Shown here: positions 6,525 through 40,700 of the stretch, in pieces
Numbering within the stretch: the stretch's first letter is position 1
Layout of the letters: each line of letters opens with the position of its first letter
NCBI GenBank assembly: GCA_904063045.1
Contig: CAJFCJ010000004.1
Coordinates: 985,713 to 1,049,712 of the forward strand
Reading direction: 5' to 3'
Origin: Dimorphilus gyrociliatus
Taxonomy: Eukaryota; Animalia; Annelida
Length of the DNA: 64,000 nt
Translations under genes and position numbers: made by a program
Notes under the pieces: model-generated
The model's input: the letters and a program-made list of their open reading frames with translations, nothing else
Databases searched by the model: none
Told to the model about the DNA's origin: nothing

Positions 6525-9500
6525 AAGCCTCATTTGGTGAAGAAGCTCGTGGCTCTAGTGGTGATGAATCTGACGAAGACGTCCGACAGCGGTTTATAGA
6601 GGTATTGTCAATAATTTCAACATTCTATTGTATAATTATCTTAAATGCCATACATATTGATTCCAATTTTGTACAATTTATTGACAAATAGCTTAAAAGA
6701 TCATCGTCCGTAAGAGCAAGCGGTCAATCCGTTTTGTGTAAGAAGAGTGCGAACGATCAAACTAAGGAAGGACAAGGTAAAGGCTTGATAATTTTATTTA
6801 ATTATATATTTTGGAGTCAGGATGCACAAAGTGTCGAAAATCCACACAAAGTTAACTAGTTGTTTATAGTTTGATGCCATAGTGTTATTTTTCATTAACT
6901 TAAGGATTAGGCTGATTAGTCACGGTACAACTATACCTCTATCTTGCTATGTGGCAAACTAAGCTTATTTTCTACTATTGCTTGAGGATTCAGATACATC
7001 CCTAATGATACCTCGTGTAGAGAGAAAGATATATTGTTTATAAAGATATTTTTAAAGAGTCATATAAAAATTTTATCAAATTAAAAAAAAGTTTGAGTCT
7101 GATAAGATTTAATAGCTAACATTATTCATACGATTAAAAAACGACATATTACAGTTGGAATTAATTATTTATAATTAAAGTTAATTATAAAAATCGTTAT
7201 TCTTTTTATAGACGAACCAGATCATCATTCTATCCCAAAGTCAAACGATTCTTCAAATAAAGACTCATCAATTCTGGCAAAGAAAGATTCAGCATCAACA
7301 AGGTCAAGAGAATAAATCCTCCTTTTCTCTCACTCAATACATTGCATAGTTCATAGACTAATTTCTTCCCTTTTTTAATTTTTATAGATCTTCTAAAGTA
7401 GAATCAAATGAGTATGATAATTACGGTTACAGTACAGAAAAAGACGTAGATATTGAGTCGAAAGTATCCAGCAACGAGGAGAATATGTCCATTGAAGGAA
7501 TCGACCATGAAGTACATTTTGCCATGTCATTTATTTTTAACGTTATTCTATTACTGATTGCTTTACAGCTTGGACAAAGTGCTGATGAAACTATAGAAGA
7601 CGAACATGAACGTCAAATTATTTCTAGATGTGGGCAAATAAATGCCACTTTCAGTTAGTAATTACAGCTTTTATTCTTTGTATTTTCTAACTTTTTTATA
7701 CTTAATTAGTCTTTGAAGAAGATAAGAAGAGAGTTTCCGTTACTATTCATAATGCTCGAGATATTCCAACGAAAGAAAGGGGAGGTATGTCCTTCACTGT
7801 CGTTCTATTTGCATTATATACCTTATACAGCATATTTATTGGAAATTTTTATTAATGTTTTATTGTAAAGCAATAATCTCATAAATGAATTTCATCTCTT
7901 AGGAGCCAATAATACTCAAGTTCGCTTACTCCTCCTACCCGTTAAGAAGGGCAAATGTAAAACAAAAATTAAGGAAGGTGAAAATCCAGAATTCGAAGAG
8001 ACGTTCAATTTTAAAATGACTGCTGGTAACTATCTATTTATAGAAAGTATCAATACATCATAACTTATTATATATCTTTTTATTTACTTTAGACAATTTA
8101 GCAACACATGCCATAAGAGTTAGGTTGTATGGTTGTGAGAGGATGAGGAGAGAACGAATGATTGGTGAAAGTGCAATTGGTTTAGGTCATCTCAAGGAAG
8201 TTAAAAATAACTCGAAGACACAAACGATAACACTGGAACCAAGAATGAATATAAACGTAAAACAATATTAATTGCATTTTCTGCCTCAACAATCCAATAA
8301 TTAAATTTTCTCCAGCCCCATATACTTTTATATAGTATACCTTATATAATCCTATAAATCACCATGAAAAACCTTAAATTTTATTAATCTAATTGAATTT
8401 GTCTCAAAAATATTTAATAGTGCTTAATTCATAATTTATTGATAGATTAATTCAATTTAAAATAATTACTAATCACGCAGACTGAAGACGGCTATGATGT
8501 CGGTTCATTGTCATTAAGCGATAGTGCATCCTCAACTCAATCGCTTCAACATGGTGGAATGCCTGAACTTCTTTTAGGATTAGCTTATAATGAAACGACT
8601 GGCAGATTGAGTGTTGAAGCCGTTAAAGGTAAATAAGAAATGTTTCTACTTCCCTTCCTTAAAATAATTTTATATCCCGTTTATCTTCCATAAAAGGTTT
8701 AATAACTAATTGATGAAATACTAATTTAATTAAAAGATAGGGTATTTACCAAAAGTGCAATGGAATATTGTTTCGTAATAAAAAAACTAAGAATAGATAA
8801 AACTATAAAACAAATTTCTACGAAGAAATTGCTTTTTCTATTGCGTAAATTAGGGACGTGTCTTTTTCTTTGTTAGCAATAAATATATTACAAGAAGCAA
8901 TTAATCTTTCTTTTTATGTAACTAGAAGTTTTTACTTCTATTGTTCCATTCAACGGTTTAATTGATAGATACATAATGACACTTGATGTACAAACGAGTT
9001 CTATATCACTATGTCTATTTGTAGATAGATAAATACACATACGTAAGTATGTGTTTACAAAGGTGTGTAAGTGTTGGTAAATCTGATTATATTGATTTTT
9101 TTTTCTATTTCTTTTCCAATAGGATCAAATTTTAGAAATCTTGCAAGCCATCGACCTCCAGATACTTATGTTAAATTTTCCCTGATGTCGCCTACGGGCC
9201 GAGAAATGTCACGCTCCAAAACTACTGTTAGACGAGGCCAACCGAATCCTTTATTCAAAGAAACTTTCATGTTCCAAGTTCCACTTTTTCAACTTCAGGA
9301 AGTAACGTTAATGGTTTCCGTGTATAATAAAAGGACAATGAAAAGGAAGGACATGATCGGCTGGTTTAGTTTAGGTAAGTGGAAAAGAAAACTGTTACTA
9401 TAAACTATATTCTTAGCTAGTTGACTGTGCAAAGAGAACGTTTCTTAGCAAACCCTCTTGGCTTTTATTGCTGATCGAAACGTCTTTATACAAATGAAGT

Positions 9501-12395: not shown

Positions 12396-15300
12396 CTCTT
12401 CTGTCATCCACTTCTCTCTATTAATTATTACTGAATGGAACAGAGTTTAATGCAATTAAATAGAGAGTAATTTTTTTTCAATAATTCCTATTACTTACTG
12501 TATATGAAATCTATGTTATTTATGTAATATCATTTAGTAGTTACAAGTACGTGATATTATTCACGTATAGTAGAATTGGTAGGATTAAGCGTATCAAGCA
12601 ATAAGAAGATGATAAATTATTTTGAAAAACAAAAACTTCTCGTGCTCAGCAAATCATTTAAAATTCTATATAAATAATATAAAGCAAGGTAGAAAAGTTT
12701 CTTTTTATGTATCATCTTCCTTTTATTTTTCAAGAAAGAAAAGAAACAATTAATCATTAACTCTTGAGCATCTTAAAAATTAATAATTAGATACAACTAC
12801 AATACCAATATATCTCTAAAATTTATATATAGAATGTTAATGTTTATTCTAAAAAAAAACACCTCTTTTATCACATCTTCGCCTTCTTATGTAACAGATT
12901 TTATAGGCTTTATTAATAATTTTGAGTATATTTTTCTTTTGTATATTTACGATATCGCTACAACAGGTACTTAACGTTTTATCAATCAGGTGGCCATATT
13001 CCCTTTGATAGCAAGTCCACCTACGAATTATTTGCATCAACATAGATTTATTACTTTTTCTTTTATTTCCTTTCAAAGAAATTTTCTAAAATAGTTTTAA
13101 GAAAATATATACTTAATCACTAAAGCTTGTGTAAAAGGTCAAATGTTAGAACCAAATGTGTGGTCATGTAAGTCAACAGTCCCCTGGAAAGCGTAATAAA
13201 AATAAAAGAATCTATTTTAATATTTAACTGTGAAATTGTGGTGTTGTTTAGTTGTTTCATATTTGAACAAACTTATTTTAAAACATATCTGTATACAGTA
13301 TACTGTATATACTTTATATATATTATGATTTACAGTGCAACTGTACACGTACACTGAATAGTACTTGTACATTTCTTTTAATAGTAGTATTTTCCCTTTG
13401 ATTAAAGTGTTTTGTCCAAAACGGAAATGGCATTTAAAAAAGAAAATAAGCCGTTAATCTATCTAGAAAAAGAAAAACAATTATTATTTTTTCGTGGTAG
13501 AATATTAGGCCTTAATTTGAATTGAAATTTATTCTAGACGATCAAATACATGCTATATGTCCATATATTGTAATTAAATGTATTACAAAAAGTTCGACGG
13601 AGTAGATAAGTTGATTAAAATTTTGCGTTCAACGCTTTTAAATCAATTTATATAGCTTATAGTGTTTTTGTACAAATTAATCTCTGAAAAAGTTATACGC
13701 AATAGGCTTAATAATTAATTTTCTATTCTAACGTTTTTCTTTAATTGTCGGCAATAAAAACTCTACTATTCCTTAAGCGTTTGGTCAATGACCCCTACGA
13801 CGATCATAAATAAAGATTTTTTTTTCAAATCAAAACTACTTAGTTATAATAGAATTAGAGAATAATAAGCCTACTTGTTGATTAGAAAGCCGTAAAATTC
13901 CAATATTTAGAACGAAATCTCTCAATTCAGAAGATTAATTATAAAATAAAATAACTTGCTATTTTTTAAAGTATCAAATGTAAAAAGAAAATTTCTATTG
14001 ATTAATAATCGATTTTTGTTCCCAAATGATGTAATAGGATTATATGTTAATCTCTTTACTATAATTGACCCAGGTTTTACTTCTCTGTAAACTAAATTGA
14101 TACCAGTGTATTTCATCTGAGTGTTATGCTTTCTTATATATCTCTCTAAATTAAATACACGTGTGGTTGATTGCAGTTGTTCAACCTGACACGTGCTGTT
14201 TTATATACTTTTTTATGAATGTTTTATAGCATGGGAACAAGAAAATATTAAGGGTTATTTTTCTTTTATCTGTAAATATACACTATTAGGGCCATTTGAG
14301 AATTGCAGGTGTTGCTATTATATTAAAATATTTTAGATTTGATATTAAACAGAGAATGAAATTTGGTGAAAATATCAAAAATACTATTTGAAAAAGATGT
14401 GGGTGGAAATTTTCTAAAAATAGGTGGAATTTCAATAATTTTCAGTCAATCAGAAATTTAAGCTGTTATCTAATTAGCGTTTATTTTTTGGATCATAATA
14501 TTCAAACCACGCCAAACCTTCTCTATTTTATCATGCCAGAAAAGTTAGAAAGTTCTATAAAAGTTGTTTAATTTCCCCCACTCCCGTATCAAACAGAAAC
14601 TTTCGCTTTTCCACTCAAACCCCTGGGATTAGCCAAATCAAAGCTTACATAAAGCAATATATAACCACCCATCCTTGGAAAAACAAACCTTTACATATCA
14701 AACCAACAAACATTCCATTGCGATCCATTCGCCAACTGCAACGTATTTTTTATTTTATAAAAAAGGGTAAAATCACAAAAAAATGGTGCAATTAATTTTG
14801 GACCCTTATGCCTTTAAAAGAGATAACGAACGATCCACAGCTGTTGGTCGTCGACTTTCAAAGCACTATCTGTTTTTACGCCTTAATTAAACGCGCGTGT
14901 AAAGCGACCTTCAACCCCGTCTGGTTTTGGGCAAACATGACGCTTCCGTTACAGCTGTGTTCAGTGTGCTGATAAACAATCTTTAGGAATGTTTGCCCAA
15001 ATGTCAACGGACGCTCTAAGTTTGCAGTTTTGTTTGCAATGTTGGTTATAAACAGAATTTTTTCTCTGGAATTCTCAAGTGTACATAGCTAACGGCAAAA
15101 CTTATGAATCAAAATATTTTGCAAGTCAAGTTTTAAAGATATTTAGTTAATCAATCCTGAATCAAATTATTATTGTATTATAGCTACGTTTATAAATCTG
15201 CTTACGTTATAACAAATGTCAATAAAACCAAACACTAACGGAACACGAAAACCCTACCCCCCCCCCTATTTTTTACATACGCGTTCAGCTATAAATTCAC

Positions 15301-16734: not shown

Positions 16735-19700
16735 AAGGGCAGTAAAAAGGGTGTGTTTGCGTGTATATATGTTTTGGATAAAATGAAAATAATTCTTTCT
16801 ACTTCTACAATTCTAATGTTTCTTACTATATTGACATTGATAGCATTTTGGTACTTGAAAATATTCACAACTTTTTTCATAATTAGATTATTTAGTATTG
16901 TGTTTTTTTCTTTATAAAAATATTGTTTATCACATTATTTTTATAGCTTTATACTATGTAGTAAATCAGATGTGGTTTTTATTTCTTTTACTATTTCTCC
17001 TTACAAGCCTTTGTAGTAAAAGGATGACTGGCGTATTGCCAAATTTTGTAAGGAGAACGCCATCTACTTTCCGGACATTTTGTCATGTAATTGTGCAGGT
17101 AGTTTTACATATTATTTCAACTGTGAAACAATTGCCAATTAGGTATTAAAACTTTTATAATATGAATAAAAGGGAAATATTAAATATAGTCGTATTAAGG
17201 AATATTTAATCGGATACTGTGAAGCGTTGTTAATAATAGTTCACATTGAACTCGAAGCGTCTCTAATTTTAATGATTAAATATGAAGAAAATTGAATAAA
17301 TATGAAGTAAAATAAATCTCAGACTACACTTTATTTGATTTATTATTTCTTGTAAACAACAAAGATTAAAAGTCTCTGGTTTTCTGGCTCTATTTAGAGT
17401 TAATCATAGATCTCTAATATATTATATACGAAAGAGAAAAACATAATAACAATAACATTATGTTACCAACAAATTCGCTTATAGATGTGTAAATATATAG
17501 CCTATAAGTTCTTTATGCTCTATAGTAGTATAGTGATGAATTGCAGTTTTAACTTCGCGTAATTAATTTCCTTTTAACCTTTTTCTTGAAAGATAAAGGG
17601 TTGTAGATAAGAGTTAAGGTTCTAATTGCTTTTCACCATTTATACAAAGAAATCGCTTTGTTTTTGTTACCTGTTTACTTTTAACATTATGTTTTCTTTT
17701 TCTTAAAATATGTTTAAAGATATAATCTTTATAATATTTTCATAAGATAGAAAAGAAAATAGATATGATAAGAATACGATGCGATTTAGCACATAACTGC
17801 GTGATCAATATACATTTATCTATATATTATGTGTATGTTAAAGTTATTTAAATTTCTTTAAGTATATTTGCATAGATAGAATATTAATAATCCATTCGCA
17901 CTTCTTCATAACTTTTAATAGGAATGTTCTGGTTTTATTAACGAATAATATTAAATATTCTTTTCGGTTTAATACCATTTTTTACAATGCCTTATGTCAG
18001 AGGGACTCCGTGGCGCAACGGTAGCGCGTCTGACTCCAGATCAGAAGGTTGCGTGTTCAAATCACGTCGGGGTCATATCTGTTTTTTCTTTTCGTTATCA
18101 GTCTTATTTTTTTTATATTATTAGTAATGCTAGAAAGTAGGTAAACAGCTTAATATAGAACAAAATATTTAATTAACCTTAACAATAACATATACTTGGA
18201 GATTTGTTTTTTTCTTACAACTTGCAAATAGAGTTGAATTCCTTCCTTCCTTCACTAAACTATACTTTCAGGAAGGGATTATTGTTAATAATAAGTGTAT
18301 TTTCTCGTTACAGTATTGTTCATTTCGTTTACATTGTACATTTATAAAGATTATCGGTAAATCCCTACTGTTAGAATGACATACAATTGTTAAACATAAA
18401 GACGCCCCGACATTTATCCAGTATTTTCTTTGAAAAGTAGAAAGGTAACAACAAGAAGAAATACTATATTCTCAATAGTTTTTGATAGTTCAAGTATACT
18501 TTAACGAAATTTAACGATAAGTATCTGAATCTTATCATCCAATCAACACCATTTATTAAATAAGAAAAGAAAACATTGTTCAATAATTTTCCTTATCAAT
18601 TGCACTAAAGAGTAGTGTGGAAAGAGGAAGAAGAGTTAGAAGAAGAAGAAGAAGTAAAATTAATTAATCTTATTTTGTATTCTATTCTTAATATGACAGT
18701 TATAATGCTAATTATTCTACTATGAGAAGATTAATTAAATTCTTAAGAGGAAAGAAAAGAGAAATGAACAGAGACTGCTTTTCTTTTATAGTACCATTTT
18801 GAACTTTATAGTGCAATTGATTGTGTTTTTTTTTGTTTTAATCAGTTCTATAAGAGAAATTAATTGCCAAGGGCAATGAGCCTGTTTATCTATATCGGCA
18901 GACTTTTTTCGTTATTTTTGCATAAATGCTCATGAAAGTGTAGAGTTTCTTATCAACGAAATTATACCCATAAAATATACAACAACATTTTTTTTCTATA
19001 AAACCCAAACTTTAGGCCTAAATCTTTAACTTAATTATCTATAAAAGGTTCAGTAATTCTTAAACACGTATGCTAAATGTTTATATAAGATTATAAAGAG
19101 TTTATCAAACTTTTTCACAGATTTTTAATGATCTCGGAAGCAAAATTGTACAATCAGTTTTCGATGGATATAACGCATGTGTTTTTGCGTACGGTACTAC
19201 GGGAAGCGGTAAAACTCATACTATGATAGGATATGAGGTAACAAATTATTGTGATATTTACAATTAGATGATAAATATACCTATAAATCTATTCTAGAAT
19301 GAAATTGGTATTACTCCAAGAATATGTCAGGTAAGTAATTTGTCAATATTTAAATAATTATAATTAGTAGTATGAATATTTATATTATTTAAATGCTCTT
19401 TTTATAGGCTTTGTTCAATGGAATAAGCGAAAGTCCTCCGGAAAAAGATGATAAACAAAAAACAAACATTTATAAATTAGCTGCAAGGTTTGTAAGAATA
19501 TCATAATTTTTGACAAAAAAACTGTGATAAATATCTAGGAAATTAAGCTTATTATAATATTTTCTGGTCTATTTCGAATTAGAAGATATATCTTGAGTTT
19601 ATATACTAGATTATCTATTCTAATCCTAATCGATTAATGTTTTACAGAGATTAATTCCATGTTGATATTAAAAAAGTTCTTTTTCCTCTTAAATAGTTAT

Positions 19701-22700
19701 TTAGAAATTTACAAAGAAAAAGTTCGTGATTTACTAGCTCCGAAATCAACTCAGGGATTGAAAGTTCGTGAACATCCAAAAGACGGTCCATATGTCCAAG
19801 GTAAAGTAATCTAATATAATCTTATAGATTATAGGTCTTTTTTTCTTATTTTTAAATACCCAATAATTTTCTAACGCTTTATTTAATCCGTTAATCGTGT
19901 GAAAATATTCGTATTTGCTTCCGATGTAACGTAGATGGCGCTTTTATTTGTAAAAAAAAACTTTTTTCTTCCAGACTTATCTCAACATGCTGTAAAGACT
20001 AATTTACATCTACAAAAGCTCATTTCTGAAGGCAGTAAAAGACGTTCTGTTGCTGCTACACATATCCATGATCGAAGTAGTAGAAGTCATGCAATTTTTA
20101 TAATTTATTTTCTACAGGTTTCCCATTGAATTATAATGATATTTTATTTATTAATATTCTAAATATTTTAAATAGGCACATTTAGAAACAAACACTCCCA
20201 GTGAAAAAATGTCTAAAGTTAATTTAGTTGATTTAGCTGGTAGTGAAAGAGCCGATAATAGCTCAAATTCAAGTTCAAAACGACTGAAAGAAGGAGCTAA
20301 TATAAATAAAAGCCTTGTTACTTTGGGTACAGTTATTAAAAGCTTAGGTAAAAATTCAAGGAAATCATTCACTTTTTCTATTTCAAATAGTATAACACTT
20401 GTTCTATTCAGCTGAAATTGGGCTCTTAAGTTCTGAATCATCAGCTTCAACTGGTACAGTTAGAAGTAGAAATCTGTACATTCCCTATAGAGATTCCGCG
20501 CTTACCTGGTTGTTGAAAGATAGTTTAGGTGGAAATTCAAATACAATTATGATTGCAAGTAAGTTTACGTTAATTCTACTCCTATAGAAGAATTTACTAC
20601 ATCTTGAATTAATTTTCACTTTACAGCTATATCTCCTACCGAAAAGCAATATTCTGAAACGTTAAGTACACTTCGATATGCCCAGAGAGCAAAAAATATT
20701 GTCAATAAACCAACTGTTAATGAAGTAAAACTTTGAAATGAAATCACAATAAGAATTGTTTAAATAATTATTCTCTCCAGGATCCAAATGTAAGACTTAT
20801 CAAGGAGCTAAGAGCGGAAATTGAACGATTAAAATTACTTCTAGACTGTCGTCAAAATGGGGTATGCAATATTTTTATAGTTTATACTTCTTCGTAATTA
20901 TTTAACTCTGAAGTCATCACTTTTTTTTTTAAATAATATCTTAACTCTCCAATCAGCCTGTTCTTAATCGATCACCCTCACGTTCCCCAAGACGTAGAGG
21001 GAATAAGACAATAGAAACTCAGGTATAAAGAAAAAAAATCCTACCATATCTTATTTAGCTATGTTTTCATTTTAAAAGCATGAACTTGAGAATCTTTATA
21101 CAAGATTTTACTCATAAAATTAATAATTTATCCTATAATTCTTAAGTAATAATCTTCATCTTCTCTGCTGAAACTTTCAAATCTATGGAAAGAAATCGAC
21201 GTTATCAAAAGACAATTTTCTTTTGATTTCTTACAATTTCACTATGCTCTTACAAAACTTTTAGCCTATCTTCCTTTTTTCTGCTTAAAGATATCGGCAG
21301 TTTTTGTAAGCCTCTAATTAAAAATATCATGCTAAAAAGACAATATTTACAAGTCAACTATTAGATAAAAAAGCGTGTAGTTTATATGAGCATTTACTCT
21401 TTAGCTTGACGTAAATAGCAATATTATGCCATAATGTATTTCTATGAGACTATAATCTGTTTAATTAGTCTTTTTTCCGCTATGGTCTTGGATTTGGACA
21501 CATTCATTCCAGTCTGGCCAAAACGTTTCCTTAACTCTGAGAACATAGTCGCACAGATTTTTCAATTCTTTGGTCATATAGGCGTTTAAACATCCATCCA
21601 TAGAATGATAATATATTTGGCAAAGCAGGCCAAAAATTGCGCAATCGAATTCAGTGATCTTGTCGCCCAATAAAAACTTTTTATCACCTAGCGAAAGAAA
21701 ATATTGAAAAATTTATTGTATTTTCTCAATTATGAGATATTTATTTTACAAACCGAGAAAATCTGAAAGGGCTTTTAGGTCTCTGCGTGCAATATCAAAA
21801 ACCTCCTCTTCAGTATGTCTACCCATTCCTTGACCATAAGCATTTTTTATCTGACCTTTTTTTACAATCTAAAGACAATTAATTATTATAAAGTGATTAA
21901 AATCTTACATATAACTTACCCAGATAACATGCTGAGGTATTTTAGAGATGGTCCAAAGCTTCGGTATTTTTTGATAGACCCACCTTTCCAGAACTAAACA
22001 CCAATACAAGTTTTCCTCAGCCATTTTCTGCATAGCTCTGCCAATTGCTAATTCGGCAGGTGTATAATCGTGATCTAGGTCCACTTTAAATTTCCTTTTC
22101 ATATACTCAATACTGAATTGGGAATCAGTAACGTCATCTTCGTTATACGAAATCCAGGGAAATTTTCCTTTCGAACTCATAACAATATCATGCAGTTCCC
22201 CTTCATATTCGATATTTGTTATCTTCATAAATAGTTCGAGTTTAATTGCAAAAGGTGAAAGAGATGGGGCATAAGGACCCCTGGGACCAATATGAGCATA
22301 GACAATGTCCTTTGGATAATTGGGACGTTTCGAAGACCTAAATAATTGTTATTTTACATTTTGTAAAAATTTAAAAATTTAAAGGTTAAACTACTAACCG
22401 AAAAAATTTAAGATAGACGCCAATTCCAACAATAGGTATAGCTACTGATGCAGCCAGATAAAGCATCTTGTTTGATGTTTAATCGGTCAACACTGAATCC
22501 TAACTGATATATTTAGTAAATGTAGGGCATAATTACAATACATATTAAATAAAATGGATGACAAAATAGCAATATTATTCATTTCTTAACTTAGTTCAAG
22601 GTCGTTGAAAAACGGGTAATTCAATTATAAAATTTTTTATGTAAAAATAATATTAAATTACGAAATTTTTAGACTACAATACAAAAAGTATTATATAATT

Positions 22701-25700
22701 ACGTATTATAAATTGAAATATGCTATGCTAACTCCAATATTCTCTAATATATTACCTGGGAAGTGTCTTCAAGTCATTCATTATTATTTAATCATAATTC
22801 CCTCTTAGCTTAATCTGACTGGCATATCAATATCGTATAAAATCCTTTTTGTAAAGAGTATACCTTTCTATTCTTAAATTTCTGTATTTTTAGTCTTATG
22901 TAAAATTTGCATAACTTTTCCCTATTAGGGATTTTAAATCTTATTTATCCTAATCTCGACTTTTTCCTTTAACCAGCATCTTATATCAAGATTGAAGGTG
23001 TCTCTTTTCCAGTTTAATTAAAAACATGCAAAGATATAGACAACTTGACACCCTGATTCAATAATTACCATTACCAAATAAAATATCTGTTATAGATATC
23101 TTTTTCAATGTCTGTGAAAAAGGTCAACCATGATATGATAACTACTTTTAAACAACGGTGCTGTTCGTAAATTATCAATGATTTTCTATTCAATGTCTTT
23201 TTTTCAGCAAGACTGATTTATAAATTTAAGATATTTCGATGAAAAATACCCTATTTTTATACATTGTAATTAATATACCTAGTCTATAGAATAGGCCTTA
23301 AATAAAGGTTGATATTCAGGACATAGACAGAAAGGAAAGAGCATACATTATATTTTCTATTCACGCAATAGAATGTGAATCCTTACTAATGTCTAGATTA
23401 CAAAATATGTCAAAAATTCGTCGCACGACTAATTCAACCGAATTTTCAATTATTGTAAAATTATTCAATTTCTGTGTAACAACTTAAATTTTATTGGAAA
23501 TCGTTTGCGGAAACTGTTAAAATATCAAAAAAAATAATGATTTAATCAGTTGCAATTGAATTAATGGAGATATAGTATATCAATCATTCTCTTTTCTCTA
23601 TAATATAATCAGGAATATTGTTTATAAGCCCTTAAAGGTGTTTTTTTCCCCTAATTTATTCGGTTGTTTCATTACTAGACTTTATAATAAGAGAAAACCT
23701 TAGCATTTGGGTAGTAGTTTAATAAAGTTATATATAAAATATAATAGTTCTTTTTATGTAAAGTAGATGTCATCATTGTTACGAAAACAAAGTTTTAGTA
23801 GGGGAGATGAGTTATCTTTTTCTCTTTGGAATATTTAACTTATAAAGTCTATTTTAGATTATTTATTGTAAAAGAGAAATGTTTACAATTAAATATTTTC
23901 CCACATGTTTGCCATTCATTATCCTTGTTAGCATTCCAGCATGATACGAAAAAAATTGTCCCAAACCTTTCTATTCTCTAAAAAATACTAAAGAAATAGT
24001 CTAACAGTTTGTTTACTAATACCCTTATATTAACTTTATAAATAATACGTTTTACTAATTATTACACTAAATGATAAAAAGTAGAGCATCATCTTTAACT
24101 CTACTCAATAAGAAACAAAAGAAATTAATATAAAAGCAATATCTCTTTTTTTCAGACCGGACAATTTTTATCAGTTGCCGATAGTAATTCGACGCTTGAA
24201 ATACGCCTTGAAGAAAGCTTAAATAGGGTAAAAATAAAAGAATTTAAACTTTAATCTTTCCAAAAATAAAGAGCAATTATTATTGACTTTAATACTAAAA
24301 TGATAATTAAGCTCTAAAACTTTTCTTGTCAACTTTTCATTAGAACTTTTGCCTTTAAAAAAAATTCGCTACCACTTTTTAGTTTCTTTTCCCTTTTTGC
24401 TAATTTGAATATTTGAATATTAATTATGCTTTTTTTTTCATTTATAAAACTTAAACAATAGGAACGTTCATTAACGCAATCTTGGATTGATAAATGGCAA
24501 ACGCCAAAGTCTGTTATTAAGGAATCTGACTTTAGTATTAGACCAATTTCTAATTTTCAATCGAACGAACGATCACCTGGAATAGTATTAGATCTGCGAC
24601 TACCTCATCTTGTCAGGATACATGACGATCTCTTATTTACGGGAGTGACAGTTTTCATCCTTCAACCGGGCACGACATCTATTGGCTCCATTCGCTCAAC
24701 CTTACCACATGATATAGGTATATTCAATTTTGTTGAATAGAAAAGTAGCACCAGTTTTAATACGACTCTTTTAGAAATGTAGTAGGCATGATAACAATTT
24801 ACAAGAAGTGCCGTTTTTTTTTTTATTAAAAGTCATACATTTACTAAACTTTGAACAAGTTTGTTGAAGTGCTTAGTAACTGTAAAACTTTACTGTTTCA
24901 ACATTTTTTTAATATTGAAAATATTAATCAATTGATTTTTGTTATCGATGTTAAGAAATTTCTACATTTTTTATCCTACAGTTTTAGACGGTTCTGACGT
25001 CTTAGATGAGCATTGTACCATCGTAAATAACGACGGTGTTGTTGCGCTTCATCCAATTGGTGAAGCTTCAATTTTTGTTAACGGGCGACAGTGTAATGAT
25101 AGAGTTTCACTGACGCAAGGAGATCATATATTCTTGGGAAGTGAAAATCTGTTTAGATTTAATCATCCGCAAGAAGCAGCCAGGTTAAGAGAAGCTAGAA
25201 GGGTAAGTGTATTAGTCTATTTCATTGTTTCCTAATTAAGTGAAATAAACTATTTCACAAAAAGAGCGTCTACGGTAAAGATACGCAAGCTGGTGCTCTG
25301 TCCAGGTGTTCTAGTACTGGCTCCATTCCAACGGTGAATAGTAGTGGCATTGACGTCCATTCTCCAGTTTCATCAAGTCCTATGTCGAGAGGGTAAATAT
25401 TAATTTTACTGTGTTGCTTTTGTCACAAAATGTATTTATCTTTATTCAAATCTATATTTTATTAATCAATAATACCTTAAAGAGTATAACTATTTAAATA
25501 TTTAATTAATAAAAGGTACTCGTTATAAAAATATTCGGTCAATTAACGATCAATGATGAAAAATTATCATTTCGTATTATATTACATACTATAAGATAAA
25601 GAAAAGAACTTATTTTATCTCAACAAGTTGAAAACTGGTTGTTGAAAAGAACTTGTAATGCGATTGTTGTTAATTTAAGAATTAATTTAGGCCTATGTCA

Positions 25701-28700
25701 TAAATAATAATAATAATAGTAATAAGTTTAAAATACACATCTATATGTATATATAATAGTTTTGTATGTACGTGCAAATGTATTAATAATCCTTGATAAT
25801 TCGTCCTTTCACTATTTACCCATCTATGTCTCGTTCTCTACGCCCTTAATCCTCCCTTCCTCTGTCTGTCTCTGTTTTTTTTTCTCTCTCTCTTTCTCGG
25901 TGTTCTATTAAAAAATAAAAAAAAAGAATATCATTGATTTATTTTTAATAAAAAAAAAGCCTTATCCAGATTATTATTATTAATATCTTATCAAGTAAAC
26001 TTTTTATATTTTCATTTAACAGGCCATCATGGAACAATTTTTGGTAAGTTTTTATTATAAAAATATACATAATATTTCTGCTAACTAGCTCTATTAATAA
26101 TAAAAATATAACTTGATCTTTATTGTATAAATTTCACTTTTTGCGATAGAATAATGAATATATCTATACTGTATATACTAATATATAGATATGCCATTTT
26201 ATTAAATAATAGCTATTTAGAGTGAATTTTACTTGATTTTTGTTATATAAAGAAAGGAAAAATCATTCTTGACGGACAGTATATTCTTTTTCGTATTTGT
26301 GATATAATTTGTTAGTTTTATAAGATCGATATATTGTAGATTTGCATACTTCTCTCAATTCCGTTATTTGTAATGATTTTTAACTTAGATATTGTTGACT
26401 TAAATTCTTAAGTTTACATAGTCTTGATTTTATGATAGCAACAAAACAATAAAATTTCTATTCTTTTTTAATTTTTTTAGCACCGAAATGGAAAGGCAAG
26501 ATGAAAAATCAACTGGTTTTAGGTAAGCAATCTCATGAATATTAATAAGTTCTTAGGCGCTATTTTTTTTTCATGAATTGTTCAGAAAAATTTTTATTAC
26601 TTGTATATATAAGATATATAATGTGATTTCCATATGGGAGTTACTTTGTATCCTTTTAAATAGACTGAATAGCGAATAGTTTCCATTTCCTTCCGGGTTT
26701 TTTTTTGTTTTAACCCTTATGACTTATAAGGTTAATGCATTCATTTAATTCGCAATTTATTTTATTTATAGTCAGAGTTTCACTGATAAATCTAAATCGG
26801 TTGTCTTTGGATTTTATAGATAAATAAATCGAAAGAGTCGCCAACTCTTTCATAGGGTAATAGAGGGAGAGATAGGGAGGGAATTCCTTTCACTATTTTC
26901 TTTCAAGTCTCCTTTTTATGACATTTGAAAATATCTTATGAATAGATCTCAGCTTTTTTCCGACTGTCCTTTATTTGCTGTTTACCTTAAATACAAATAT
27001 ACGCCTACATAAGAAAAAAGACACATTCCCTCTCTCACTTTCCTCTCTCTTTCTCACTTTCCGTGTTTCTTTGTTTCTCCTATTTCTGTCCCAATAGAAA
27101 GTGACATTTTATATATAACTATCATATTTTTGGTATTTGAACTAGACCATTTTATATGTGTATACACTGTTTTAAAGATAAAAAAGGAGAGAAAGCCAGA
27201 AAATTAATATTATTTTTAAGACGGAATCGATTGCTCTTCCTTGTTTATTGTATTAAATAAAGAATTGCAATAATTTGATTAATGAATTGAAGACAGATTT
27301 AAAACACTTATCAGATTTCACAACAAACGTAATAATCAATATGTTCCGTTTGACTTTCTATAAATCGAACTAACATCTATTGACAGAATTTGGCTTATTA
27401 ATTGATTCAATAATTGAAGCAATTATACAACGCATACAAGTCATAATTAAATGTACTGCGAAAACGTGTCCCTTGCTTTTCTTTTCGCCTTTTAGATTGT
27501 TTTTTTGTTGGCTTTCTCTTTAACAACAACAAGAGTGTTTTTTTTTAAACGTTTTCCACCTTGTATTGTATGCATTATGTAATAATGTTGAAAGTATCAA
27601 TCTGACTAAATTAGCCCTATATTAAACGTATGAAAAAACAATATAACAAAAGAGTAAATTTTTTATAAATACGATTTTAGACATTTCTTTAAAAAACTAG
27701 ATTTTTAATAATAAAAAAAAAATATTCAAGAAATTGAAAAACATCGAAGGCTGCCTTATCAAGAATTTTTACCTGAGTCCTCAGCCTATCTTAATCAATA
27801 TGCCACGTGACGCTATATTTTAGTCACGTGGTGCCGTGGTTGATCATTGCTGGCCTAACGATAGAAACACGTGGAACAAACCCAGGAAGAGATCGTCTTA
27901 GGGTTAAGATTTTAAAAAAAAATTGGATATTATGCTTGTCCTGCCTCGATTCTTGAATTCAGTGGAATCAATACAATAAGAGACATTTAAAAATGACGTT
28001 ATCTAGAGGACTATAGAAAAAAAATAGGCGTTTTAATTAAAAAAATAAACAAGAGACAAAATGTTTAAAAAGCTCTTCTGCGGAAGAAAGAAATGCAAGA
28101 AAAAAGGGAATAAAATTTATCCAGATCTCGCCCCACAGAGGCTAAGTTTAATAGGAAGGCAAAAAAGGTATATTTGTTAAACCAGCATCAATACATAAGG
28201 CAGCTATGACATGTATATATGTGCTATATTTCTATATAATAACTCTACATATACGGTAGCTAAATAGTCCATATAGATTAGACTATTTTTAGATTATTAT
28301 GCATAAGTTAACAATTTCACTAACATCTGTTAGATTAAATACCAGTTTTTGAAAGTCTTAAATTCTTTTTTGAACGAGCACTCCTAAATGACGTCAAATT
28401 TATTGATTGACACCGAAATCGATAAGAAAGATAAGGTGAAAAAGGAATCTCTCTTTCCCATTGTACCGATCGTTATACTGTACTTTCGATTAATAAAGCA
28501 GGTATAATAATTAATAACAGTTTTGATTTGGTTGGATTTATTCTGAGTAGTGTCGAAATGATTGAACTCGATTTATACGGGAGAAATTCAATATTTTCGA
28601 TAAAAGAAATGAGTAGTTTTAATTACGTATACTGTTAGTAGTCTACTACGACTTTCACTTATTCGTATACAATATATATATAATCCTTCTGACTCTGATT

Positions 28701-31700
28701 GTAGATCTAACTGATTAAAAGGTTGTTTTAAAAAATCTTAAACTATACTAACTTGTTTAACCTCTTTTACGGACACTGTTATGTCTGTATGCAAAAGTGG
28801 CAATTTAATCGGTTAGTTTTAAAAATTAGGGGGATTTTACGCCTTGTTACTTCAATTATTGAAGAAAGTAGAGGGTTAGAGGTCTTTTAACAATGTTAAG
28901 TGTCATATACAATTCTTAGCGTATAGATTATAAAATAGTTTAAAAACAATCGATCTAGCTAAATCTTATATATCTAATATATAGTATATATACTGCATAT
29001 CCTACTTTTTAGACTCAATTTATCGATAATTGTTAGTTTTTATTTTCTTTGATAGGCCTACCCATCAATTTTAATCATCTAATCCGTAATATGCATTGAA
29101 ATTATTACAATTTACAACAAAAAATTTACTAATAAACTCAGAAAGGAGTTTTTTTTATTATTAGTTAGGCATATACCTATCATTGCAAATAATATACAGT
29201 AATAAAGGAAAGCTCAATTTGCTTGTTCTTTTTTTTTTTGAATAAATAGGCTAAATATTTTTACTTTTGTCAATGAGGTATTGATTATTATTACTATCAT
29301 GAAGAACAAGGTTTTATTGGGTGAAATATAATGTAAATTCACTTGTAACCCTCTCTCCTCCCCCCTCCCCCCTCTTCTTCCCTTTTCTAACGCGAATATA
29401 TATTTAGTCCGCTTAATTTTTAAGTGAACGTATAGTCAACAAGATTGCCCTTTTTATGCCCTTGTCTACGGATATAAAATAATATATACAAACAATAATC
29501 CTTAAATAGAAAATTTCTCAGTAAATATATATCGAAATGTCATAATAACAAATGAAACTAAGCATTTAACAAAATACAAAAGTAGTAAAAGAATTTTTCC
29601 TATTTTTGTTATCGTTCCTCCACAATACTGTTCACTTTACGTACCTTTGTCTTTCTATTTAACTCTTCAATTCATATATCTTTTATCTTTACCGACATAA
29701 AAATCTAATAATAATAAAAGAAAAAGGTGTTAAAAATATATATACACTAGAAAATCTTTTGAACTCTTTTTTTTCCCACTTAAAATTATTAAGTATTGGA
29801 ATTTGAAGGAAAACATTCATTTAATGGTAAATAAATTCTATCTATTTAGATTATTAAATCAAAAAATAGTTTTTTATCATTAAAAGAAATAATATTGAAT
29901 TAAGAAAGGGTTATTGATCTGAACAGTTCTTAAATAGCGCCTTTTTTATTATATCCTTTATAAATTTATATATATATATACGAGTATATTATTTTGAAAA
30001 ATTTTTCATTCTTACCCTTATATAGATCTGATCTAGAATATGAGGATCATAGGACAAATTATATTGAAACCGAAAAAGAATATTATGAAAGATCGAGGCC
30101 TCAATCTGAAGATAGGAGAAGTTTAGAAAAGGAAAAAGAAGTATTGGAAAATGATAGAAAGAAATGCAGAAATGATTATAGAACGACTTTAAATCGTATA
30201 AAACAATTAGAAAATCAATTAAAATTGACTAAACCTGAAGTGTATGAAAGAGTGCCTCGCGAAAATTTTCGTCCTTTGGAGCCTTCCGTTAGTTGTGGTG
30301 ATTTAGCAATTCAAGCTCGACCAGATATTGGTCATTTAGCCGTCCAAACGGACAGTGATGTTATTTCAATAGCTTCTACTGTTGGTAGCGTAGGATCCTA
30401 CGTATCATGCCCCCCTACCTTAATGAGGTAAGCTATTTTTTCTTATAAACAATAGCAACAATTACGTTATTTAATTAAAAAAGAATGTTAAAGATCTTAA
30501 TTGTCTGTAAGATAATTTTCTTATCTAAAACAAGAGAATTCGTTTTAATTGAAAGAAATGTAAGTGAAAATATTTAGATTATTTATGACGTTGGCGGTAC
30601 TCAGTTATTTTTAAAACTTAATAATATTGATAAAAAGAAATATTTAGTACAAATGAAATCAGTTCAAGCATCTTCCCTACTATAAATTTTTATATTTTTT
30701 CATAGTAATAAATTGATTTAGAAGCTGGCAATAAACCTAATTCTTTGAAAATATTCGTAAACAACTCCTTGAATTACTTCAATATTGTTAAACAAAGTCA
30801 TAAATTATTTATAAATTCCTTATAAAGGCCTAATAATTTATAAATTTTATTATTCTTATATAAATAATTTTTTAGACTATCTTCTTATAAAATGTATTAT
30901 ATTAACTGTTTCTATATAAATATCTAATTAAGGGTTATATCGATTTGTGTAAATTTTCTTGTTCTATTACTATTATGAATTTATATATTCGTTAATAATA
31001 ATCTAGAATTATTATTATTTTATATAAATTTTTACATTCTATTCTCATTTTTAATAGGTCATCTTCGAGACGATCTAAAAGGAAGAGGGATTTCGATATA
31101 TTTTTAGCGAACAGACATTTACAGGATGCTGAAAATAGTCGTTTAAGGAGCGTTGAAGAGGAATTAAGGCAGGATAATGAGAGAACAATTGAACAATTAA
31201 GATATGAACAAGAGAAAGTTGAAATTTTAAAGAAAAGAGAAAGACTTCTCTTGAGTTGTATGGATAGAGAAGAGCCTCTTGGTGAGAGTTATAGTGAAGA
31301 TAATTCCCGTCTACGTGTCTCTGCTGAAATCAATTTTGACTATGGTAATGATTTTACATTTCTCTTTTACAATCTCATATTCTTCTATTCCTTACCCAAA
31401 ATAGATAAGGACTGTGCCATGAAGAGAAGTACCTGCTCTTTGGATAGTCAAGTAATAAGAAAACAAGTTGAACCATCAACAGGTCTTTATAAAACATCCA
31501 GCCTTAAGAGTTTTCTTAAACAAAGAAGAGATTCATTCGAAAAAATTGAGACGAAATGCAAGTCGGATATAACCATTTTTGTCCCAAATTCAAGTAAATT
31601 AACAGGATCTAAAGATATGAACACTGAAATTAGCAATATTGATAATATTCCCAACACGGAGGTGGGCGTAAAAATTGCTTATGAAGAGGGAACGCCAATT

Positions 31701-34700: not shown

Positions 34701-37700
34701 TTGACAGAGGAAGAACTAACACTTTATGAACAAGAGAGTGAACAGATGGAAACAAACGAAAAAGTTAAAAAGAGACTAGAGCTTCAATTCGAAGACTCAG
34801 CATCTACTGATAATAATGATATGGACGAAGGTGTGTCTGATAATCAAATTGTTGAATTATCTATAAGTATTGAAGAACGTACCGAGAATATAGACTGTCA
34901 GTTAAGAGAGTCAACTCAAGCAGAAAGTTGTTTAATGAAGGGTCTAATCGAAAATAAACTTCAGGAAACTGACAATATAAAAGATTTAGACGGCAACAAT
35001 AGATTATCTGACTTGAAAAAACCTGTTACGGAAACCCACGCTATTGTTTTTTCAAATAAAGAGTCTGATCTAAACGTTTCAGAAGAGTTGACGTCACCTC
35101 TCTGCAGTGATCCCAATGAAGGTACTAATGAGCAGTTAGAGGGCGAAAAAGACACCAAACACGAGGAAATATCAAAGCAACCGCCAATCTCACCCAAATA
35201 TAGCGATGAGTCTCTTACAGATCCTCTCGTGGACGAAGCCAGGGAAATACCTCAACAAATCGACATTGAAAAGTTTACTTCGAAAGCAATCTCTGATGAA
35301 ACGAAAAGTGAATGTAAATCAACCATGGCTGATCAAATAAATTCAGAGAGAGAGGGTGAAGCCCATAGTCCAAACATAGAAGAATCTCCCGCGTTACCAT
35401 ATAAACACAATACAGATGCACAATCTGATGAAGATACTGATGATACTGCAAGTTGTCCAGGATCCGTAGATCTTAATAAAAGCTCTAATGATAATACAAA
35501 CGAAATACCTAAAAATGTTGGTGACAGTTCCATTCTAGCAGCTGGACAAGAGGATGACAAACGAAGCAGTTTGGATGATCCTTGCAAAAAATCTTCCGAT
35601 GCGAAAGCTGATGACAATGGAGCTGCAAGTGTCATTTATGAAAATCCATTCGATGAAGATATCGAACATTTCCGATCTTTAAATGAAGGAGAACCCTCAA
35701 CTACTAATGAAAATCTTAATGTTAATCTCTCCTCAATTAAGGAGATATCAGATGACAGTTATCCTGAAGATACAAATAAACATTCACGATTTTTATTTGA
35801 TACTGAACGAGATCTTGAAACTCCAGTTTCTAATCAAACTTCAAGAATTAACGACTCTGCTTTACTCAAAATGTCAGAAACTGAATTTAAGGAGCAAAAT
35901 ACAAAAGAAATTCAAGAAAAATCTGTTATAGTGCATGCAGTAGTGGATAATCAACCTGACATACTTGAAAATTTTCCTATCGTTCAACCTGTGTCGTCTG
36001 TCGTTGAACTTTCTTGTACAATTACTAGTGAAGAAAGTAAGGAAAGTATTGAGAACAGAGGAAAAGAGAATAAAGATAATAAACATGAAAACAAAGAAAA
36101 GCTAAACAAACCGGATGAGAGCGCAATTCTTGATGCTGATGAAAGTAAAGAGAGTACAATTATTACCGATGAATCAAAGGGGAGTGCCATGTTATCAACA
36201 GAAAAAGACAAGGAAAATTTCACCGATAATAAAGAGTCTAGAAGAAGAGATGGATCTCCATCGGCAAAATTTGACAACAATACCACTGCTATTGAAACAT
36301 TAAAACAAGAGTGTGATTCATTACTCATAGAGAGAGAGGAAATTATTAATGACCAGAGTTGTTTAAGTGAAAGATATAAAGGTGATGAAAATATCATTAA
36401 TTTTGAAGAAATTAAAGTTGATTCGCTTCGGGAAGAAAAGGAAATCAATGTAGAAATGATTAACATTACTGATGAGCCTGGAGACAACGTTAGTTTTCCA
36501 TCAACTGAAAAGATTATAGATGACGAAATTGGAACAAATGCAGAAGAATGTAAAGACGATAATTCTCTTTCACTAGAAAAGAATATATGCACAGATATTT
36601 CTATTGACTCGAATGAGCTTAAAAAAGACGATGGTTCTCTATCAACTGATAATGCCAAAAGCAAAGTACTTACAACTGATACTCATGAATCTGAGTTAAG
36701 AGATGCATCGCCAACAACAGAAAATATCAGACTGGACGATAGTACTATTGACCATGAAGAGTATCACCAAAGCAGCGATACACTACTGACAGCAAAGAAA
36801 ACAGCTGAAAAAAGAACAGGCAACAATAACGCTGAAAAGAATAAAAACGTCAAAAATAACACCGAAAGACCTGAAGAACTTTACTCGCTTTTAAAAGAAC
36901 GGGAAAGCGATCTCGAAAGTCCAATTAACACTGCTAAATCGAAAGAGAATTTAAATTCTATACAAGTAAAGACAGGAAGTGAACAAAATATTACTTCTAT
37001 TAAAGAACCTAATGCCAGTGACTCACTTCCAAAAGAAAGAGATATCGATATAGAAAGTTCGAAAGATACTGATGAGACTGAAGAGTATGTTAGTTCTTTA
37101 ACAATAAAGTCTGGAAACGAACCAATTATTACTTCAATGGAAGAACCAAGTGAAAGTGATTCTCTTCCCAGAGAAATAGACAGCATCAGAGAAGGTTCCA
37201 AAGAGATTCTTGAGACTGAAGACAATATTAGTTCTCTACCAATAAAGACTGGAAATGAAACAATTACCACTTCCATTGAAGACCCGAAAACAAGTGATTG
37301 TCCCTCAAGAGAAAAAGACAGCGTCAAAGAATGTTCCAAAGATACTGATGAGACAGCAGAGCATGTTAGCTCTCCAATGGTAAAGTCTGAAAGTGAACAA
37401 ATTACCACTTCCGTTGAAGAACCTAAAAAAGAAAGTTCCAATGATACTGATGAAAATGAAAAGACTATTATTCCTACACCAGTACAGGCTGAGAATAAAA
37501 AAATCACCGCTTCTTTTGGAAAACTAAATGCAAGTGATTCCCTTTCAAAAGAAGGACATACCGATGCAGAAAGTTCCAAAGATACTAATGAGAATGAAGA
37601 GAACATCAGTTCTCTACCAATAAAGTCTGGAAATAAACCAACTGTCACTTCCATTGAAGATCCTAATGCAAGTGATTCACTTCCAAAAGAAAGGGATATC

Positions 37701-40700
37701 AATCTTGAAATTTCCAAAGGTACTGATGAGACTGAAGAGTATGCTACTTCTCTACCAATAAAGTCTGGAAATGAACCAACTATCACTTCCATTGAAGAAC
37801 CAAATGCAAGTGATTCACTTCCAAAAGAAAGAGATATCAATCTTGAAATTTCCAAAGGTACTGATGAGACTGAAGAGTATGCTACTTCTCTACCAATAAA
37901 GTCTGGAAATGAACCAACTATCATTCCCATTGAAGAACCAAATGCAAGTGATTCTCTTCCAAAAGAAAGGAATATCGATCTTGAAATTTCCAAAGATACT
38001 GATAAAACTGAGGAGTATGTTAGTTCGTTACCAGTAGATTCTGGAAATGAACCAACTATCACTCCCATTGAAGACCCTAATGCAAGTGATTCACTTCCAA
38101 AAGAAAGAGATATCAATCTTGAAATTTCCAGAGGTACTGATAAAACTGAGGAGTATGCAACTTCTCTACCAATAAAGTCTGGAAATGAACCAACTATCAC
38201 TTCCATTGAAGAACCAAATGCAAGTGATTCTCTTCCAAAAGAAAGGAATATCGATCTTGAAATTTCCAGAGGTACTGATAAAACTGAGGAGTATGTTAGT
38301 TCTTTAACAATAAAGGCTGCAGATGAATCAATTACCACTTCCATTGAAGAATCTAAAACAAGTGATTCTCTTCCAAGAGAAAAAGATATCGTTAAAGAAG
38401 GTTCCAAAGATACTAATGAGACTGAAATGGATATTAGTTCTCTACTAGTAAAGGCTGGAGCCGAAAAAGTTACCACTTCTATAGAAGAACCTATTACAGA
38501 TTATTCACTTCCAAGAGAAAGAGATATCGAAAAAGAGATTTCCAAAGATACTGATGAGACTGAAAAGAACATCAGTTCTCTACCAATAAAGTCTGGAAAT
38601 GAACCAACTATCACTTCCATTGAAGAACCAAATGCAAGTGATTCTCTTCCAAAAGAAAGGAATATCGAAAAACAAATTTCCAAAGATACTGATAAAGCTG
38701 AAGAATATGTTAGTTCGTTACCAGTAGATTCTGGAAATGAACCAACTATCACTTCCATTGAAGACTCTAATGCAAGTGATTCACTTCCAAAAGAAAGAGA
38801 TATCAATCTTGAAATTTCCAAAGGTACTGATGAGACTGAAGAGTATGCTACTTCTCTACCAATAAAGTCTGGAAATGAACCAACTATCATTCCCATTGAA
38901 GACTCTAATGCAAGTGATTCACTTCCAAAAGAAAGAGATATCAATCTTGAAATTTCCAAAGGTACTGATGAGACTGAAGAGTATGCTACTTCTCTACCAA
39001 TAAAGTCTGGAAATGAACCAACTATCACTTCCATTGAAGAACCAAATGCAAGTGATTCTCTTCCAAAAGAAAGGAATATCGATCTTGAAATTTCCAAAGA
39101 TACTGATAAGACTGAAGAGTATGTTTGTTCTCCAATGGTAAAGTCTAAAAGTGAACAAATAACTACTTCCACTGAAGAACCTAATACAAGTGACTTGCTT
39201 CCAAAAGAAAAGGATATCGATATAGAAAGTTCAAAAGATACTGATGAGACTGAAGAGTATGTTTGTTCTTTACCCATAAAGTCTGAAAACGAACCAGGTA
39301 TCACTTCCATTGAAGACCCTAATGCAAGTGATTCTCTTCCAAGAGAAAAAGATAGTGACACAGAAAGTTCTAGTGATTTTGATGAGACTGAAGAGCATGT
39401 TTGTTCTCTACCCTTAAAAGCTGAAAGTGAACAAATAACTTCTTCCCCTGAAGAGTCTAAATCCGTTGATTTGCTTGTAAAAGAAGAAGGCGGCGACACA
39501 ATACACCTCAAAGATTCTGATGAGACTGAAGAGCATGCTGGTTCTCCTATGATAAAAGCTAAAAGTGAACAATTTACTGTTTACCATGAAAAACCTAATG
39601 CCAGTGATTCTCTTCCAGGAGAAAGATATATCGATGAGGAAGGTTCCATAGATGCTGATGAGACTGAAACAATTATATCTCTACCGGTTAAGGCTGCTAG
39701 TGAACGAATTTACACTTCTGTGGAAGAAGATAATGTAGACGATTCTGTTCCAAAAGAAAAGGATTACGTTAAAGAAAGTTTAGATAATATCGATGAGACT
39801 GAAGACCATATTAGTAAAGAGGACAAAGAGAAGGAAAACACTAGTACTTTTGAAGAACTGGAAAAATTTGATTCGCTTCCGAAAATAAGTGAAAGCGATG
39901 TTGATATTGATGAGCCGGAGGAGAACAATACTTCTGTATCATCCGAAACGGTTAAAAATAAAGATGGCACATGTAATCTGAAAGAACCCAATGAAGAAAG
40001 TATCAATGATAGTGATAGTCCTATGGAGATTACGAGTTCTCTATTAACAGTCAAGACTGATGGCAAACAAAGTTCTACAAATTTCGGAGAGCCTGAAGCA
40101 AGAGAATTGCTTCCGATTGAAAAAGATACGCATGTAGAAAGTTCTGATGATATTGATGAGCCTAATGATAATGCTAATTATCCATCATCAGAAAAATTCA
40201 AACATGACGAAATTACTGCTAATACTGATGAATCTGAACAAGAAGGTAGATCTTCGTTGACAAAAGATAGCAGAGTTGACGATAGCACTACTGGTCATGA
40301 AGAATATAAACAAGAAAGTGTTATCCTACCAGCCGGAATGGAGAAAACTGATGATAGTGTGAACGATAATAAAGAAGTTTGTTCTTTTTCAAACACATTG
40401 GAGAAAAACAAAGATAATACAACTGAAAATGATTATTCTAAAGAAAGTGAAGAACTCACATTAGAAAGTCCACCAGCTAGAGATGAAAAATGTACAACTG
40501 ATACTCAAGAAAGTGATATAGCATTGGGTGGAAGAGGAGGAGATGGAGAAAGTACAGTTGATACTAAAGATTCTCAAGCAGATAATAGTGAAGTATCTAT
40601 AGCAAGATACATAGATAAAGAAGGTACTTATGGTATTGAAGAACCTGAACAGCCAAGTGATTTCGTATCAAGAAACACTGACAGAGATAGAGAAAGTACC

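Follow-up and report, generated by a model that had tools for sequence, protein, structure and literature searches.

The window, a 64,000-nucleotide stretch of Dimorphilus gyrociliatus DNA to which all coordinates refer unless stated otherwise, carries on its forward strand a giant kinesin-3-type gene. An exon in a 3.5-kb intron of this gene, downstream of all motor and FHA exons, was found in RNA to be spliced in frame to an exon at 30026 that is also part of the canonical message. The exon has its own ATG, and no RNA contig linked it to the exons that encode the motor or the FHA domain. It is probably an alternative first exon that gives rise to an isoform lacking both domains, with probable translation from its own ATG. 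A preliminary description based on the sequence had proposed a hidden first exon of a motor-less isoform at 28061-28167, the observation is confirmed, and the core of this reading is supported by the RNA. The features concerned are as follows.

28061 to 28167, forward strand: coding part of the alternative first exon, from the sequence, its translation and an RNA junction in run X5 at depth 33.8.

27729 to 28060, forward strand: 5' leader of the same exon, minimum extent in RNA, from X5 record 9 and, for part of it, X1 record 1.

28168 to 30025, forward strand: intron of the alternative transcript, 1858 nucleotides, GT..AG, from the joint in X5.

26481 to 26522, forward strand: last canonical exon before the shared acceptor, ending in AG and leaving 2 bases, from X5 record 7.

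30026 to 30427, forward strand: first shared exon, 134 codons, coiled-coil-like, from X5 record 11.

RNA runs were picked for holding positions 27940-28260, and four of them were compared over 24900-30500; all consisted of assembled contigs, not reads. Run X5 was taken to be complementary DNA, because its contigs skip introns at GT..AG boundaries. X5 record 9 (467 nucleotides, depth 33.8) matched the window without a gap over 27729-28165 and then continued with 30 nucleotides from 30024. The joint, 28165(+2) to 30024(+2), corresponds to the junction 28167|30026 with GT..AG boundaries, exactly the junction that had been predicted. The canonical path was represented by X5 record 7 (depth 34.9), which comprised 24980-25201, 25264-25393, a microexon and 26475-26519(+3), followed by 30026, so that the canonical junction, 26522|30026, was unbroken in this contig. 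Consequently, exon 26481-26522 has no alternative downstream partner of similar abundance. Both junction contigs stopped 30-31 nucleotides into the shared exon, where record 11 (depth 48.1, 30024-30429) took over; an assembly with k=31 breaks where two paths merge, which accounts for these ends. A separate study, a coral metatranscriptome (run X1), contained a 192-nucleotide contig at 27964-28157 (record 1, depth 2.6) that lies wholly within the exon and provides weak but independent support for it.

One possibility is that record 9 is an assembly artifact in which unspliced intron RNA or DNA was fused to the downstream exon. Logan contigs do form false joins, and a candidate upstream exon joined at 27704 was rejected: its 255-nucleotide loose end maps to contig C13, which touches the window through about 17 low-complexity bases held in common, a chance overlap. 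However, the join in record 9 falls exactly at GT..AG, uses the canonical acceptor and keeps the reading frame. Moreover, a de Bruijn join needs a common word of about 30 nucleotides, and none exists between 28140-28167 and the sequence from 30026 onward, while the depth of the contig is four times that of the neighboring intron contigs. A chimera is thus exceedingly improbable.

The sequence of the exon agreed to the base with the preliminary description as regards the peptide, the donor and the phase. The interval 28061-28167 consists of an ATG and 34 further codons (35 in total), then AG and the donor GTATAT (AG|GTATAT), giving a coding part of 107 nucleotides (35x3+2). An in-frame stop at 28046-28048 makes the ATG at 28061 the first of its frame. 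As had also been noted, the open reading frame (ORF) is too short for the ORF track; at less than 60 residues it was absent from the ORF list. The exon that ends at 24717 has a donor of the same type, AG|GTATAT. The sequence before the acceptor reads ...cttatatag, and 2 bases remain before 30026 on the canonical path as well, according to a base count along spliced X5 record 7 that was started at the FHA exon, with the frame set by the Pfam match of that exon. Since both upstream exons end in AG, the junction codon formed with A30026 is AGA and the residue at the junction is Arg in both isoforms. From this codon the frame continues through the 134 codons of exon 30026. Of the three possible frames, that of the ATG at 28061 is the one leading on into more than 10,000 open codons, and the sequence around this ATG, AAAATGT, is a good start context. 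The frames were verified by arithmetic, and the exons were searched individually rather than as a joined, spliced protein model.

The surroundings of the exon start have several promoter-like properties, and the two elements of interest are listed here.

27664 to 27671, forward strand: TATAAATA, a TATA-box-like element with a putative promoter role, 58-65 nucleotides before the first RNA-contig base.

27804 to 27873, no strand assigned: three CACGTG E-boxes, putatively functional, 3/6 of the copies in the window being found within these 70 nucleotides.

There are 12 forward-strand copies of TATAAATA in the 64 kb, which corresponds to a chance of about 2% of finding one within a 60-nucleotide zone, and its position suits a TATA box that directs initiation near 27.70 kb. 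X5 depth was 8.7 over the upstream part of the intron (26705-27616), there was no X5 coverage at 27617-27704, and coverage rose from 0 to 33.8 between 27705 and 27729; the contig itself starts at 27729, directly after an A-run. The GC peak of the intron, 41-45% as compared to about 27%, is at 27750-27974 and includes the three E-boxes. The segment 27700-28200 is single-copy in the genome, and there was no Rfam match at 26.4-30.1 kb, so that a transposon, a tRNA or another known RNA was rejected for this stretch. A spliced leader was likewise excluded, since D. gyrociliatus, whose published genome is 73.8 Mb, lacks trans-splicing (10.1101/2020.05.07.078311). The median intron in this species is 66 bp, and open chromatin is found preferentially in unusually long introns (10.1101/2020.05.07.078311). 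The host intron, at 3.5 kb, is about 50 times the median, and the tendency of long Dimorphilus introns to hold open chromatin hints at regulatory content. Taken together, these features suggest that a putative promoter within the intron drives the alternative transcript. The preliminary description had placed the start at 27.9-28.0 kb; the X5 data put it further upstream, near 27.70-27.73 kb, while the X1 contig, which begins at 27964, is in accord with the original range.

A pair of further CACGTG copies, 32 nucleotides apart, was observed at 14158-14195; it precedes the kinesin motor exons and may belong to the main promoter of the gene. The location of 5/6 of the CACGTG copies in the 64 kb at these two places hints at one bHLH-ZIP factor for both starts.

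The exon could also be a cassette ('poison') exon of the full-length mRNA, with an acceptor near 27680-27700, in which case translation of the motor protein would end early at its stops and the ATG at 28061 would not be used as a start. Acceptor-like sites do occur just before the contig start (ttttag|a at 27680 and ctag|a at 27700), and assembled contigs cannot prove a 5' end. On the other hand, coverage was missing at 27617-27704 and no joint into the exon from any upstream exon was present among the X5 contigs. In addition, the canonical contig was unbroken at 26522|30026, unlike what is expected for an equally abundant second exit, and the TATA-like box and the GC-rich E-box island are situated where a promoter would sit. 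A cassette exon is accordingly very unlikely.

Several observations weigh against an alternative first exon that yields a functional protein, 1) the contigs cannot give strand or RNA level any more than the true 5' end, and the junction 28167|30026 was seen, as contigs, in one data set only, 2) the acceptor-like ttttag|a at 27680 is plausible by sequence, with no RNA over it in the runs compared, 3) an ATG-initiated ORF of at least 30 codons that reaches any phase-2 GT arose in 74% of the Markov-shuffled versions of the intron (26523-30025), and in 6-7% when a GTA[AT][GA]T or GT[AG]N[GA]T donor was demanded, so that, judged by its sequence, the exon would hardly be beyond chance, 4) the exon stretch is A-rich (AT skew +0.4), which by itself favors Lys codons, 5) the leader, if it begins near 27.70 kb, contains three upstream ORFs, with ATGs at 27800 (7 codons), 27932 (15) and 27993 (7), which may lower or block translation of the main ORF, and 6) the RNA link from exon 30026 reaches 31058 and somewhat past, short of the giant exon that begins at 32544. 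All three upstream ORFs close before 28061, and two of them would be lost if the transcript began at 27964, where the X1 contig does, leaving the one at 27993. The RNA junction is what lifts the exon above chance.

Points 3, 4 and 5 would be explained if the transcript were real and its product nonfunctional, that is, if an intronic enhancer or cryptic promoter fires, a chance donor is used and the RNA is poorly or not translated, the peptide being an A-rich by-product. The encoded peptide, moreover, has neither an amphipathic signal nor a paralogue in the genome. Against this, the X5 depth of 33.8 is close to the canonical value of 34.9 and is not trace noise, the exon was also present in the second study, and an ATG in good context is in frame with more than 10,000 codons. 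A nonfunctional product is unlikely, although it deserves to be taken seriously. The reading as a first exon of a motor-less, FHA-less isoform was considered the best, because the exon is joined in frame to 30026 and has no link to the motor and FHA exons.

If the exon is an alternative first exon, the following course of events may be envisaged. An internal promoter in the 3.5-kb intron, downstream of every motor and FHA exon, would start transcription near 27.70-27.73 kb; the first exon would end at 28167 and be spliced to the acceptor at 30026 that the full-length mRNA uses. Translation would begin at the ATG of the exon, at 28061, in frame with everything downstream. In the predicted product a strongly basic head of 35 residues with two cysteines would replace the motor, neck and FHA domain, followed by the junction Arg, while the coiled-coil exons would be retained, as would the acidic tail with its roughly 10,700 residues. 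A motor protein reduced to its tail usually serves as a competitor or a static anchor. The likeliest function of the motor-less isoform would be to occupy or anchor the partners of the tail without itself moving along microtubules, whether as a static tether or in competition with the motorized form, and the head may give the tail a new address.

The preliminary description had gone further and regarded the head as a membrane anchor that combines S-palmitoylation with charge. The head has a net charge of +11, with +9 in residues 1-18, and contains Cys7 and Cys12 near the hydrophobic residues F2, L5 and F6 and near basic residues, positions that are appropriate for such an anchor. It has no signal peptide and no Gly2, and an amphipathic helix was not detected in it, the hydrophobic moment not being above that of shuffles. 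N-terminal dual-signal anchors are found in GAP-43, with Cys3/Cys4 and basic residues, and in RGS16, with Cys2/Cys12. The head resembles these in that its cysteines are in the first dozen residues, next to hydrophobic residues and a Lys/Arg run. It differs in that it would sit on a chain with a net charge of about -1600, in the amphipathic moment and in that acylation is putative. The KKCKKK run would fit a nuclear-localization pattern or a tubulin-tail-binding patch equally well. A role of the head as a membrane anchor or tether is one possibility, though not a likely one. More speculative still is the combined scheme in which the head is S-acylated and the locus, through an intronic promoter switch controlled by the E-boxes, would make two proteins with a common C-terminal partner-binding end, a walking kinesin of about 12,000 residues and, at about 11,000 residues, an acidic tether that lacks the motor and is anchored by lipid. 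The tryptic peptide IYPDLAPQR is unique to the head.

The search for relatives covered, besides other collections, the genome assembly that contains the window, 77.9 Mb in 349 contigs. A 43-residue open frame around the head gave no candidate relative, and an exact look-up of the 39-residue genomic ORF gave no match. The sole other match to the head in the genome was on contig C5 (E 0.23) and was rejected as an unconvincing paralogue. The representative search with the shared exon returned one fragment of 80 residues that was 89% identical, from a Tara-Pacific coral sample, and two coiled-coil look-alikes; no relative of this exon was found in the JGI metagenomes. The contigs of the cluster members (L012-L015) are about 75% identical in DNA to the shared exon region and the acceptor is kept in these relatives, but they hold at most 1173 nucleotides upstream of the shared exon. 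No head-like peptide was present in the 1173 nucleotides upstream of the exon-20 homologue in L012, although the head lies 1858 nucleotides upstream in D. gyrociliatus, beyond the reach of that contig. The contigs of the relatives of the FHA exon (L016-L018) are at most 1.6 kb long and stop short of the head region. Positions L012:1-23 are an Illumina adapter (…GTGTGCTCTTCCGATCT); thus the 5' end of L012 is a library artifact and not a genomic boundary. Contigs of another run, X2 (organism A), were 91-94% identical to the locus at 24900-25059 and 27329-27534, intron included, which indicates that a closely related species or strain is present in public data.

The remaining exons of the host gene that define the two isoforms are given below.

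19112 to 20557, forward strand: kinesin motor exons, absent from the alternative isoform, matched by PF00225 positions 55-302 at C4:1004824-1006269, single exons confirmed.

24982 to 25202, forward strand: FHA-domain exon, absent from the alternative isoform, matched by PF00498 (E 9.5e-8).

32544 to 64000 and on to window-equivalent 64511, forward strand: giant exon, a single open exon of 10,656 residues.

The best solved relatives of the FHA domain were those of KIF1B, KIF1A and KIF13B, and the occurrence of a kinesin motor (PF00225) followed by such a domain (PF00498), both detected on single exons, assigns the gene to the kinesin-3 type. The alternative exon in its RNA-supported extent, 27729-28167, is downstream of all of these exons. 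The canonical mRNA also contains a 21-nucleotide microexon at 26023-26043 (aacag|G ... TTTTTG|gtaagt), between exons 25265-25392 and 26481-26522; in the X5 contig it is represented by 14 unplaced letters plus common bases. The shared exon 30026-30427 joins 31058, the loose end of record 11 having been located at 31060. It had no Pfam match and no paralogue in the genome.

The continuity from exon 30026 to the giant exon is predicted from frame-compatible GT..AG paths. The product of the giant exon is 26% Asp+Glu (E 16.6%, D 9.4%) and 11.3% Ser, with 8 Trp and a net charge of -1592. When the upstream exons are included, the predicted length of the full kinesin is more than 11,500 residues, and the gene probably encodes the largest kinesin known. 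No Pfam family was found in the giant exon, in the last 667 residues or in the last 404 residues. Similarly, residues 1-2000 of the giant exon had no match among proteins of 5,500-17,500 residues, and the last 404 residues of the tail gave no usable Atlas match. It had been presumed that a START domain is kept, but this did not hold; the genome has eight matches to PF01852 and none of them is on contig C4, which carries the kinesin gene.

Within the giant exon, about 15 tandem copies of a 138-nucleotide (46-codon) unit, 82-84% alike, occur at 37527-39668, and a weaker tandem array is at 36943-37423. The last 400 or so residues of the tail have a paralogue at C5:1583089-1590729 (L019, L002), with 72% DNA identity over 330 nucleotides. 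The motifs that the two have in common include ...PNAPIYAESLTP.QRMKYLA.KRRRL... and mark a shared C-terminal module without a Pfam family. The gene on C5 encodes about 2,400 residues or more, and no kinesin exon was found within about 400 kb of it, so the tail end is a module that also exists without a motor.

As to the neighborhood, exons at 7362-9400 on the forward strand, upstream of the kinesin gene, resemble by eye those of a C2-domain (synaptotagmin-like) protein. The next gene downstream, also on the forward strand (window-equivalent 68.3-71.3 kb, L004/L005), is ionotropic glutamate-receptor-like. It is followed by a large conserved unknown gene at 72.9-76.1 kb and a Kazal-type repeat ORF at 77.9-78.5 kb.

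If the motor-less form is made at a similar RNA level, knock-down, antibody and expression studies of this kinesin must separate both forms. The example also shows that short first exons hidden where a compact genome has its few long introns can be detected by sequence and then verified in public RNA data.

Three known systems may be compared with this gene. STARD9 / KIF16A is a giant kinesin-3 with a C-terminal START domain (PMC10203878, PMC3383713). The D. gyrociliatus gene shares with it a kinesin-3 motor at the N-terminus, an FHA domain and a middle part that is very long, disordered for the most part and derived largely from one huge exon. Unlike STARD9, it has no START domain, and its strongly acidic tail exceeds twice the length of that of STARD9; with PF01852 absent from C4 and no Pfam family in the giant exon or the tail end, the label STARD9 was rejected for this gene. 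Short nesprin isoforms arise from internal promoters of the giant nesprin-1 and -2 genes (PMC3981789). As is predicted for the kinesin, the short forms made by these giant tether genes lose an N-terminal cytoskeleton-binding module and keep the C-terminal part (PMC3981789). The nesprins, however, lose actin-binding CH domains and keep the KASH anchor, whereas the kinesin would lose the motor and FHA domain and keep a C-terminus without a recognized domain.

The closest parallel in a motor gene is headless myosin-X (Hdl-Myo10), which arises from an alternative transcription start within Myo10 (PMC6345916, PMC5725431). It is reported not to induce filopodia and to be located at the plasma membrane (PMC6345916). 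As is predicted for the kinesin, the product of an internal start in a cytoskeletal motor gene lacks the motor and has the tail. Headless Myo10 differs in being a brain-specific vertebrate myosin that binds the membrane through its tail domains and not through a new N-terminal peptide. The motor-less form of the kinesin, by comparison, is known from RNA contigs and its protein is predicted. The principle of a headless motor isoform made from an internal promoter is thus already known from myosin-X and the nesprins, and the interest of the present example lies mainly in the extraordinary gene in which it occurs.

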